Positions 11,101-14,100 of a stretch of DNA of 64,000 nt are shown piece after piece. The stretch is from positions 186,001 through 250,000 of the forward strand of contig NIVC01000162.1 of the NCBI GenBank assembly GCA_002269645.1. The letters run 5' to 3'. The first letter of the stretch is position 1. The number at the start of each line of letters is the position of its first letter. The translations under genes and the position numbers were made by a program. Under the pieces are notes generated by a model, which searched no databases, had not been told where the DNA came from, and saw only the letters and a list, made by a program, of their open reading frames with translations. This DNA is from Macrostomum lignano. Lineage: Eukaryota.

Positions 11101-14100
11101 TACTCATCAACAACACTCGCCCATGCAAGCTCTGCTCCGATTGGCTGGCGCCCAACACGCGTGGAACAGCCACCTTACGCCCTGGCCTCACCCTTTTCCA
11201 GCTCTCTACCCTCGCACAAGCACGCTCGGCTCCGATTGGCTGGCGCCCAACACGCCTGGAACAGCCACCTTACGCCCTGGCCTCACCCTTTTCCAGCTCT
11301 CTACCCTCGCACAAGCACGCTCGGCTCCGATTGGCTGGCGCCCAGCACGCAGGGCACAGCCACCTCAAGCCGCGCTCTTTAAGATTCAAGCCCCACGCAC
11401 CCAATAAGTTTTCCGTTTTTCCAACGGTGTTCTCGTGCGGCACTCCGAAGATATGGCCGTCCGTTGCTTTCCAGGCTCCCCAAACGAACTCGTCATCGTT
11501 AGCCGTGCTGCTCTGCCAGGCTGGCGCTCGCCAGGCCGTGTTCAGCGGCAGCGGCGGCGGCGAAGGGGACTCAGACAGGCTGGGCGTCTCCGACCGGTGC
11601 AGACAGGTGTTGTCCTTGATGCTGAGGTAGGTTTATTACGCTTTTTGAGGGAATAGAAAATATTTGTCTTAGTTTTAAGTGTAAATCAAGGATTATCTGT
11701 GTGAATCAGGAACTTTCTGTGTGAATCAGATTGTCTGTGTGAATCAGTAGGTGTCTCTGTGATCGCGAAGACATCTGTATGAATCAGCGTGTGAATGATT
11801 GGGGTACCTAGGAAAAGTATCACGTATGTGGAAGCGTATTTGATAAGTCAGTACACTCTGGGAGCAGCTCTTACAAGAGGTACCGTTCCAGGTTCTGCAC
11901 GGCGCAGGTGGACCAGCCGCTGTCCTCGTACAGGCCGTAGCGCATCAGGCCGGAGTAGCACAGCTCGCTGCTGCGGCCAGCGTAGTCGTCAGGCATGCCG
12001 ATCCTGCGGGACGGCCCGGTTGCCACGGTAACCAGATTATGAGGGGCTCACTGTTTTGATATTTAGTCGAAAAACGCTGCTTTTTTATTGCTGGGGGAGC
12101 AAAAAAAGCAACTACTCGAACAAAAACAACTCACAAGTGTCCGATCTCGTGCGCGATGGCGCGGATGAGGGTGTTCGCCTGCAGCTTCTGGTGGTGCACG
12201 CAGGCGCACTGCCGGGCCTTCAGCTTCGAGTTGCAGGCCTCGCTCGGGAAAGCCACCCCACCTAAGCCGTTGCAGTGCCGCTTGTTTCTGCGGGGCGATT
12301 CTGTCTGTCTGTCTATCTGTCTGTCTGTCTGTCTGTCTGTCTGTCTGTCTGTCTGTCTGTCTGTCTGTCTGTCTGTCTGTCTGTCTGTCTGTCTGTCTGT
12401 CTGTCTGTCTGTCTGTCTGTCTGTCTGTCTGTCTGTCTGTCTGTCTGTCTGTCTGTCTGTCTGTCTATCTGTCTGTCTGTCTGTCTGTCTGTTTGTCTGT
12501 CCGTATGCCCCATCATTCGACAGTGCATACTCACCCTGTGAGTATGAGAACAAAGTCGGGCTGGAAGCTTCGCTTCCACTCGGATTGCGAAGTGCAAAAT
12601 TTGATAAAGTCCTATAAATACGGGTGATTAGCTTGAGAAAATGCTTTTCAGCACTTTAAATACTAAAAAAACTGCAGTTGAAGCGCTGCATTACTAACGA
12701 AATTTTCTGGCTCAGATTGCGATCCATTGAGCACTGTGACGTAGCTGACTCTTAGCCACAGTCGGTAGCCTAGGCTCGGGTGCAGGTACCACACCTGGGC
12801 CTGCAAAATGGAATCTGATTTGTACCCTGTGATACTACTAGTAGTAGTAGTAGTAGTAGTAGTACTACTACTACTACTACTACTACTACTACTACTACTA
12901 CTACTACTACTACTACTACTACTGCTACTACTACTACTACTACTACTACTACTACTACTACTACTACTATTACTACTACTACTACTACTACTACTACTAC
13001 TACTACTACTACACTCTGTATCTGATACCTACATAGTGTATCAATTCGGTCGTGAAGACCAGCGCAGAGTCGCGGTCAATGGCGTACGCCAGAGTCAGGC
13101 TGTCTATCCATGTCTAAATTGTAAGACCAATTTTTTTCAATGCAGATGATATTCAGACAAATTTAATTTCAATTAATTGGTGAGCGTTAATATGATTTCT
13201 GAACAAAAAATTATTTATAATTGTGATTGGTTGCTACCATTTGTTACAACCAAATCAAAATGTATACTGGTGCTAATACGACCCACTTACGCACTCCCTG
13301 AAATGATTAGAAATTTTTTTTCAAACCTGATCAATAATGACGCTGAATTCTGCGTAAAGTTCTCGCCCGACTGGCACTCGGGGCAGCTGGCCGAGGTTCA
13401 CGAAATCTGTTCTCTTTGGTAAGTATGGATTTGGCTGTTGGCTCTTGCTAATATTATGATTGATCTCGCCGCCGACGCCGCCGCCGCCCAGTGGTTGTTT
13501 GATCTCGCCGCCGCCGTCGCCCAGTGGTTGTTTGATCTCGCCGCCGCCGCCGCCGCCGCCCAGTGGTTGTTTGATCTCGCCGCCGCCCAGTGGTTGTTTG
13601 ATCTCGCCGCCGCCCAGTGGTTGTTTGATCTCGCCGCCGCCCAGTGGTTGTTTGATCTCGCCGCCGCCCAGTGGTTGTTTGGTCTCGCTGCCGCCGCCGC
13701 CAAGGGGTTGTTTGATCTCGCCACCGCCGCCGCCCAGCAGTTGTTTGATCTCGCCGCCGCCGTCGCCCGGTGGTTGTTTGATCTCGCCGCCGCCCAGTGG
13801 TTGTTTGATCTCGCCGCCGCCGCCGCCCAGTGGTTGTTTGATCTCGCCGCCGCCGCCGCCGCCCAGTGGTTGTTTGATCTCGCCGCCGCCGCCGCCGCCC
13901 AGTGGTTGTTTGATCTCGCCGCCGCCCAGTGGTTGTTTGATCTCGCCGCCGCCGTCGCCCAGTGGTTGTTTGATCTCGCCGCCGCCCAGTGGTCGTTTGA
14001 TCTCGCCGCCGCCCAGTGGTTGTTTGATCTCGCCGCCGCCGTCGCCCAGTGGTTGTTTGATCTCGCCGCCGCCGCCGCCGCCGCCCAGTGGTTGTTTGAT

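Follow-up and report, generated by a model that had tools for sequence, protein, structure and literature searches.

A Macrostomum lignano gene for an adamalysin-type metalloprotease with aspartate at the third zinc-ligand position, and its relatives in nemerteans

The window analyzed here is a 64,000-nucleotide stretch of the genome of the flatworm Macrostomum lignano (assembly GCA_002269645.1, contig NIVC01000162.1, positions 186,001 to 250,000 of the forward strand), and coordinates are positions in the window unless another copy is named. On its minus strand we found an intact gene of 15 exons that runs from 16498 to 7760, has GT-AG boundaries at every intron and encodes 1085 amino acids, as modeled by threading GenBank proteins. 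To judge from its translation, the product is a secreted multidomain metalloprotease with an M12B-type catalytic domain, in which Asp stands in place of the third His of the zinc motif. We consider it probable that this is an expressed, intact M. lignano gene of an Asp-type adamalysin, belonging to an ancestral His-His-Asp lineage common to flatworms and nemerteans, with Asp11 most likely holding zinc.

The motif is read as the reverse complement of 12151-11982, where a GT-AG intron (12134-12004) separates AHEIGHL from IGMPDDY. A sequence-only reading of this stretch, which gave no strand, had proposed the spliced string AHEIGHLIGMPDD, with Asp at position 11 and an intact catalytic Glu, and the codons bear it out on both counts. 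It had also placed the Met-turn SGLMRY after the motif; the turn is there, but its Met falls 15 bases beyond the range 11960-12170 assigned to the feature. The elements of the site, with codons read directly from the DNA and a slash marking each splice junction, are as follows.

12151-12149, minus strand: CAC, His1
12148-12146, minus strand: GAG, catalytic Glu2
12145-12143, minus strand: Ile at position 3 of the motif
12142-12140, minus strand: Gly at position 4 of the motif
12139-12137, minus strand: CAC, His5
12135 and 12003, minus strand: Leu codon TT/G split by the intron; donor TT/gtgagt with last exon base 12135, acceptor cccgcag/G with first exon base 12003
12004..12134, minus strand: intron 8, 131 nt, GT-AG, phase 2, cutting the zinc motif between positions 6 and 7
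12002-12000, minus strand: ATC, Ile after the intron
11999-11997, minus strand: GGC, Gly8
11996-11994, minus strand: ATG, Met
11993-11991, minus strand: CCT, Pro
11990-11988, minus strand: GAC, Asp11, the third zinc-ligand position
11987-11985, minus strand: GAC, Asp12, the family-specific Asp
11984-11982, minus strand: TAC, Tyr13
11945-11943, minus strand: Met of the Met-turn in ELCYSGLMRY

The spliced motif, HEIGHLIGMPDD, thus has Asp rather than His at position 11 and departs from HEXXHXXGXXHD at the third His; position 12 retains the family-specific Asp. In alignments the Met of CYSGLM, 15 residues downstream of Asp11, is invariant or nearly so. Threading of a homologous protein on the window gave the junction of intron 8 a higher score than any other GT-AG solution, and the same splice is used in the GenBank models BOX15_Mlig001002g2 (895 aa) and BOX15_Mlig000675g2 (919 aa, PAA90054.1), both of which contain AHEIGHLIGMPDDYAGRSSELCYSGLMRY. 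Because the GenBank annotation of Mlig_3_7 derives from a genome-guided RNA-seq transcriptome (PMC5730564), transcripts support the splice at the sister loci and show that the gene is expressed. The spliced piece by itself scored 24.9 bits against Pfam Reprolysin (PF01421; cut-off 20.8) and the whole catalytic domain 33.0 bits, and a homologue carries its motif without an intron, which together argue that the motif does not arise by chance.

The gene model comprises the following parts.

16318..16498, minus strand: exon 1, to the limit of the model; 100% identity in tblastn with GenBank model P0001; junction TGT/gtgagt
16462-16460, minus strand: likely start ATG; N-terminus MLRFFRLLLRVQVLLLHGSAIC, hydrophobic and signal-peptide-like as judged by eye
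15030..15361, minus strand: exon 2, propeptide (ending in LYIGTVDAGTKEQGWAAVTLIGDG), Cys-free, aligning with nemertean propeptides
14357..14484, minus strand: exon 3, end of the propeptide (beginning IRAYIVTNINDYMLNVPL), by threading
13327..14251, minus strand: exon 4, a (GGGEIKQPL)n repeat, then YLPKR, then the first catalytic strand GRELYAEFSVIIDQ, by threading
13033..13113, minus strand: exon 5, catalytic domain (TWIDSLTLAYAIDRDSALVFTTELIHY), by tblastn and threading
12699..12800, minus strand: exon 6, catalytic domain (AQVWYLHPSLGYRLWLRVSYVTVLNGSQSEPENF), by threading
12535..12611, minus strand: exon 7, catalytic domain (DFIKFCTSQSEWKRSFQPDFVLILTG), by threading
12135..12287, minus strand: exon 8, active-site helix to AHEIGHL, 100% match to GenBank models P0001 and P0002
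11875..12003, minus strand: exon 9, IGMPDDYAGRSSELCYSGLMRYGLYEDSGWSTCAVQNLERYL, with the Asp at the ligand position, family Asp, Tyr and Met-turn, by threading; donor TT/gtaaga
11621-11401, 11039-10905, 10824-10741 and 10610-10485, minus strand: exons 10-13, galactose-binding-like (F5/8 type C_2) domain, aligning with the nemertean domain
10257..10411, minus strand: exon 14, first ShKT domain (Pfam ShK 23.9 bits)
7760..8188, minus strand: exon 15, second and third ShKT domains (Pfam ShK 36.5 bits, two stretches), with the stop codon at 7762-7760

An apparent in-frame TAA at the end of exon 9 is part of the donor site TT/gtaaga, and the D, Y, C, G, M, W and C columns of this exon are invariant in the alignment. 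The M. lignano propeptide piece alone had no Pfam match and aligns with the nemertean propeptides, which pass Pep_M12B_propep at 30.1 and 31.1 bits (cut-off 23.7). A cysteine-switch Cys was sought in the translated M. lignano propeptide past the signal peptide, and none was present. The YLPKR of exon 4 is a possible dibasic cleavage site, and the nemertean proteins have RAKR or RTKR ahead of the catalytic domain. The galactose-binding-like piece of M. lignano alone scored 15.2 bits, whereas the nemertean domain passes PF22633 at 42.6–47.1 bits.

The repeat in exon 4 is a tandem array at about 13476-14250 on the minus strand, with a 27/30-nt unit encoding (GGGEIKQPL)n between the propeptide and the catalytic domain. 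It belongs to the coding sequence in both GenBank models (P0001 and P0002), and its copy number is unequal among the assembly copies of the locus (about 7 units in the C1550 model against about 30 in C127 and the window), with the frame kept in every copy. Long, near-perfect micro- and minisatellites, among them (TCTG)50, (TAC)60, a 16-mer repeated 31 times at 100% identity and a 15-mer repeated 54 times, nearly fill the introns at 12300-12501, 12833-13012, 14498-15000 and 15436-16269.

Profile and structure comparisons both placed the catalytic domain, about 200 residues long, with the adamalysins. Full-length models scored 29.4–29.6 bits and the nemertean relatives 29.8–43.0 bits against Reprolysin. 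Peptidase_M7 (PF02031) gave 20.3–24.4 bits (22.4 for the catalytic domain), under its cut-off of 25 and with only profile positions ∼73–107 matched, and Peptidase_M6 gave just 11.6–13.7 bits. The best sequence match among solved structures was an adamalysin over 150 residues, with "mpdd" aligned on "mnhd" and Asp11 on the third His. A model built with AlphaFold2 (AF2) from 13 aligned sequences had a mean predicted local distance difference test score (pLDDT) of 58.8 and a predicted template modeling score of 0.61; when it was compared with the PDB by Foldseek, all of the top 50 matches were catalytic domains of adamalysin, ADAM or ADAMTS proteins (E down to 2.6e-8, TM-score ∼0.5). No disintegrin-like, TSP1 or cysteine-rich/spacer module follows the catalytic domain of the window protein, which has the galactose-binding-like domain and three ShKT domains instead. 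Because of the Reprolysin score, the adamalysin match, the Foldseek matches and the lack of disintegrin and TSP1 modules, we class the protein as a protease of M12B fold whose architecture is that of neither ADAM nor ADAMTS and which departs from the family in its third His. The proposal that this is an animal reprolysin with an atypical Asp zinc site stands in part, in the form of a flatworm adamalysin-type protein whose relatives share the Asp.

Those relatives came from one exhaustive HMMER search of 1.84 billion representative proteins (E <0.001), which returned just 17 matches. The top three (E 1e-34 to 5e-27, 32–34% identity across the entire catalytic domain) are uncharacterized proteins of the nemerteans Tubulanus polymorphus and Lineus longissimus that share one architecture, namely M12B propeptide, Reprolysin, F5/8 type C_2 and ShK; their motifs read HELAHSLGVPDDY, HELAHGLGMPDDY and HEMGHLLGMADAY. 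Two nemertean ADAMTS-like proteins with TSP_1, ADAMTS_CR_3 and spacer domains read HELAHTLGMADEY and HETGHLFNMPDDY, and four short fragments, traced to samples SRR25727943 and ERZ17086556, read …SDDY, …GDDY, HESGHEFGALDDY and HENAHGFGIPDDY. The motif HETGHLFNMPDDY, from the T. polymorphus ADAMTS-like protein P0011, has Asn in place of the usually obligatory Gly. A Gly-to-Asn change in this motif is otherwise reported for lower pappalysins.

A D-x-Y sequence (D-[D/E/A]-Y) and the Met of C-x-x-G-x-M are conserved in 10 of the 10 clade sequences, so that the Asp is invariably paired with Tyr at +2, a pairing that the sequence-only reading had left unremarked. The nearest His-type matches (P0014 and P0017) have H-D-F there, with Phe at +2. 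When the ligand and +2 columns were masked, a tree of 107 columns still had a branch that parted the eight Asp-type sequences from the others. A fragment from another organism (L038) has an intron in the motif at the same codon and phase (CAC CC/gtgagt … tag/A TTG GGA); the motif of an environmental-contig homologue (L039), HESGHEFGALDDY, has none. Word-indexed homology searches beyond M. lignano gave the query alone, both for the six-protein alignment and for the Tubulanus catalytic domain, so that the extent of the clade is known from the single exhaustive search. In the literature we found no report of Asp-type M12B proteases in flatworms or nemerteans, nor of the identifiers of this gene.

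Within M. lignano, a six-frame Reprolysin profile search of the genome gave 88 exon matches, from which 30 loci were fetched. Every complete motif in these loci was HExxHxxGxxHD, representing at least 11 distinct genes, most of them in two or three copies, and their +2 residue was E, D, A, S or N and Tyr in none. The window gene was itself missed by this exon search because an intron splits its motif. A genome search with the peptide of the window gene found only its three copies, and the Tubulanus catalytic domain likewise found only these copies as strong matches (E 3e-11; next 0.37). Conservation of the Asp, which the sequence-only reading had wished to see examined, thus holds for the closest orthologues, all of which carry it, but not for the M. 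lignano paralogues examined, which keep His. None of the outcomes that it had named as speaking against the Asp appeared: the transcript-based models use no other acceptor, no copy reads CAC, and none of the closest orthologues has His at this position.

Taken together, the masked tree, the reverse genome search, the shared intron position and the conservation in 10 of 10 sequences lead us to regard the Asp as ancestral to a small flatworm-nemertean adamalysin lineage, and as an old, inherited and constrained residue rather than a private mutation.

In the mechanism that we propose, zinc would most likely be held by the two His of HEIGH and by Asp11 of HEIGHLIGMPDD, with Glu2 as the general base; the Met of C-x-x-G-x-M, which is invariant, would pack beneath the metal. 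Tyr13 occupies the tyrosine-switch position of snapalysins and igalysins and possibly assists catalysis. Latency would probably be relieved by cleavage of the propeptide at a basic site, with no cysteine switch; we propose this because the propeptide has no such Cys and because RAKR, RTKR or YLPKR precedes the catalytic domain. The galactose-binding-like and ShKT domains would probably direct the enzyme to extracellular substrates, possibly by way of glycans. Since every catalytic element is conserved, we infer that the enzyme is active, and by analogy with ADAMDEC1 its Asp site may slow turnover and change the response to protein inhibitors.

Several observations weigh against this interpretation. 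The Pfam scores are modest, and the pLDDT of the AF2 model drops below 50 over residues 175–222, which is exactly the segment of the Asp, Tyr and Met-turn, the lower subdomain being poorly modeled. Support for the branch of the Asp clade is moderate (74/78, and 76% of bootstrap trees, on 107 columns). The propeptide and the galactose-binding-like domain of M. lignano are recognizable only via alignment with the nemertean proteins, and the case for zinc binding and catalysis in the clade is made from conservation of the catalytic residues. An Asp site can also mean dampened activity, by analogy with ADAMDEC1.

The most probable of the alternatives is that the protein is a dead or strongly weakened pseudoprotease that acts mainly via its binding modules, the Asp marking the loss or damping of proteolysis. 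ADAMDEC1, the sole characterized Asp-type ADAM, is reportedly dampened in its activity, if we go by the title of the 2013 paper by Lund et al.; in addition, the catalytic domain studied here is divergent, with low Pfam scores, and a propeptide without a cysteine switch may signify that tight control of latency is needless. However, the His, Glu, His, Gly/Asn, Asp, Tyr and Met-turn are invariant across two phyla at an overall identity of 18–39%, which would be unexpected for a disused site. Moreover, the Asp-ligand proteases snapalysin, thuringilysin and IgAse are active (PMC12237041), and so is ADAMDEC1 in vitro (PMC5174729). We therefore regard loss or strong damping of proteolysis as unlikely, and favor an active Asp-type adamalysin.

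A second alternative derives the motif region, or even the catalytic domain in its entirety, from a bacterial protease of the snapalysin (M7) type through horizontal transfer or gene conversion. A local match of 39 residues to the Streptomyces snapalysins 1c7k and 4hx3 (R..AHE.GH..G.PD.Y.G..SEL; E ∼5e-4), the 20–24 bits obtained with Peptidase_M7, and a Kitasatospora protein that is 54% identical to the motif stretch over 22 residues would fit such an origin. Yet the M7 score stays below the cut-off of 25, and the snapalysin match covers the motif only, against 150 residues for adamalysin, while Foldseek returned M12B domains only. The gene has 15 exons and shares its motif intron with another organism, and its relatives carry M12B propeptides, TSP1 and ADAMTS modules. 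The Met follows the Asp by 15 residues, as in adamalysins, versus about 10 in snapalysin, and no close bacterial relative was present among the 1.84 billion proteins. With a match that is local only, an exon-rich gene and similarity to adamalysin over the whole domain, we rejected a bacterial origin as very improbable. The Kitasatospora sp. protein (P0012, 5534 aa, EndoU domain-containing) has four HExxHxxGxxD-like stretches, and these hint at a polymorphic-toxin-like protein in which snapalysin-like modules recur.

The locus occurs in triplicate in the assembly, on contigs that we call C162 (the window), C127 and C1550, the counterparts of window positions 11874-12286 being C127:59069-59481 and C1550:148729-149141. 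All three are identical over the motif and read GAC GAC TAC; they are separable by a synonymous Leu codon (TTA, CTA or CTC) and by intron differences, with near-identical exons and several introns at 88–97% identity with indels. Outside the repeat, C127 differs from the window at 14 synonymous and 7 nonsynonymous codons and C1550 at 6 synonymous and 1 nonsynonymous codons; in the catalytic domain all 4 counted differences among the copies are synonymous, a count that excludes an I/L difference in exon 4, which is gapped. Substitutions distributed in this way are typical of purifying selection on a gene. Three copies are in keeping with the reported redundancy of Mlig_3_7, the DV1-line assembly, and redundancy is expected, since the sequenced line has additional large chromosomes (PMC5730564). 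Agreement among three distinguishable copies argues that the GAC codon is no sequencing error. A UniProt model (P0003), which probably comes from the earlier independent assembly, begins MPDDYAGRSSELCYSGLM and thus also reads MPDDY. Although the assembly is redundant and rich in repeats and REAPR gives only ∼64% error-free bases for it (PMC5730564), we set aside as least probable of all the idea that the Asp reflects a fault of sequencing or assembly, a mutation private to one decaying copy, or an acceptor site chosen in error, because 3 of 3 copies and the second gene model agree, transcript-based models employ the acceptor, the open reading frame is intact with mostly synonymous differences between copies, and orthologues carry Asp.

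Two further features lie near the gene. Just upstream of it, on the opposite strand, an uninterrupted open reading frame of 1353 aa at 17596-21657 (plus strand) contains aspartyl protease, reverse transcriptase, RNase H and integrase domains; judged by Pfam content only, it is a long-terminal-repeat retrotransposon pol with a Ty3/gypsy-like domain order. The minus-strand open reading frames 29428-28565 and 26498-25977 jointly match a rhodopsin-family G-protein-coupled receptor (7tm_1 positions 2–189 and 199–260) and are probably one two-exon receptor gene with a repeat-rich intron, adjoining the retrotransposon.

Three His are used by nearly all adamalysins; the single characterized exception, ADAMDEC1, has passed for an oddity of mammals, with a damping Asp and escape from TIMPs. 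A second, much older Asp lineage in two invertebrate phyla would be a natural replicate for the effects of a His-to-Asp change on zinc affinity, catalysis and inhibitors, and would mean that the adamalysin scaffold has converged with bacterial snapalysins and igalysins at the metal site. The value is comparative and nothing is overturned. A bolder proposal, which we put forward tentatively as a possibility, is that a flatworm-nemertean subfamily swapped the third His for Asp long before and independently of ADAMDEC1 and gained Tyr at +2 in the same step, making it a mechanistically distinct "tyrosine-switch adamalysin." If so, its metal site may have altered metal affinity or pH dependence or resist TIMP-like inhibitors. 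Transgenesis exists in M. lignano, which makes function in vivo accessible (PMC5730564).

Comparison with known proteases places these features in context. The metzincin zinc motif is HExxHxxG/NxxH/D, in which an Asp third ligand is rare yet established in snapalysins, thuringilysins and igalysins, and in several metzincin families a nearby Tyr forms a "tyrosine switch" thought to stabilize the reaction intermediate (PMC12237041). The sequence-only reading, which held the Asp variant to typify microbial metzincins, was incomplete in that it overlooked mammalian ADAMDEC1 (PMC4885070; PMC5174729). The window sequence HEIGHLIGMPDDY and the snapalysin sequence HETGHVLGLPDHY share an HEXXHXXGXXDXY site in a structure-sequence alignment; over HExGHxxGxPDxYxGxxSEL the flatworm protein and Streptomyces snapalysin (M7) are near-superimposable, with the Asp ligand and the Tyr at +2 in both. 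They differ in that snapalysin has ∼132 residues, a minimal lower subdomain and its Met ∼10 residues past the Asp, whereas the flatworm domain has ∼200 residues, aligns with adamalysin over its full length and falls under the M7 Pfam cut-off. We think that convergence at the metal site accounts best for the resemblance, because the intron-rich gene and the whole-domain similarity to adamalysin outweigh a likeness to snapalysin and the Kitasatospora protein that spans only ∼20–40 residues. The igalysin IgAse (M64) and thuringilysin/immune inhibitor A (M6) likewise have an Asp third ligand, and IgAse has D-x-Y spacing (D550-E551-Y552), with the Tyr near the zinc but unbound (PMC12237041). Both, however, are bacterial and have other folds around the core, and the IgAse motif, HExxHxxxGxxD, has an extra residue before the Gly.

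ADAMDEC1 resembles the window protein in having an M12B catalytic domain with Asp for the third His, and it demonstrates that such a departure is compatible with membership of the family (PMC4885070). The ADAMDEC1 gene belongs to vertebrates, and its product retains a short disintegrin-like domain; the gene is said, in the title of a 2002 paper by Bates et al., to have arisen by duplication in an ADAM cluster on chromosome 8p12. The flatworm-nemertean proteins, unlike it, have no disintegrin domain and carry galactose-binding-like and ShKT domains, or TSP1/ADAMTS modules. ADAMDEC1 (decysin-1) is the sole mammalian ADAM with the zinc motif changed to HEXXHXXGXXD, and is reported to be secreted, soluble, proteolytically active in vitro and able to escape TIMP1-3 (PMC4885070; PMC5174729). 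An invariant Tyr at +2 marks the flatworm-nemertean lineage. ADAMDEC1 was absent among the 17 matches of the exhaustive search, and because no search here linked the lineage to it, the Asp-type lineage likely arose independently. With the canonical M12B proteases (ADAM and ADAMTS), the window protein shares a pass against Reprolysin, the adamalysin fold, the family Asp after the third ligand and a Met-turn ∼15 residues on; an M12B-type propeptide is seen in its relatives, and ADAMTS ancillary domains occur in two members of the clade. It differs from them in its third ligand, which is Asp rather than His and has Tyr at +2, in a Met-turn that reads C-x-x-G-x-M in the lineage versus C-I-M, and in having neither a Cys in its propeptide that could serve as a switch nor a disintegrin domain.

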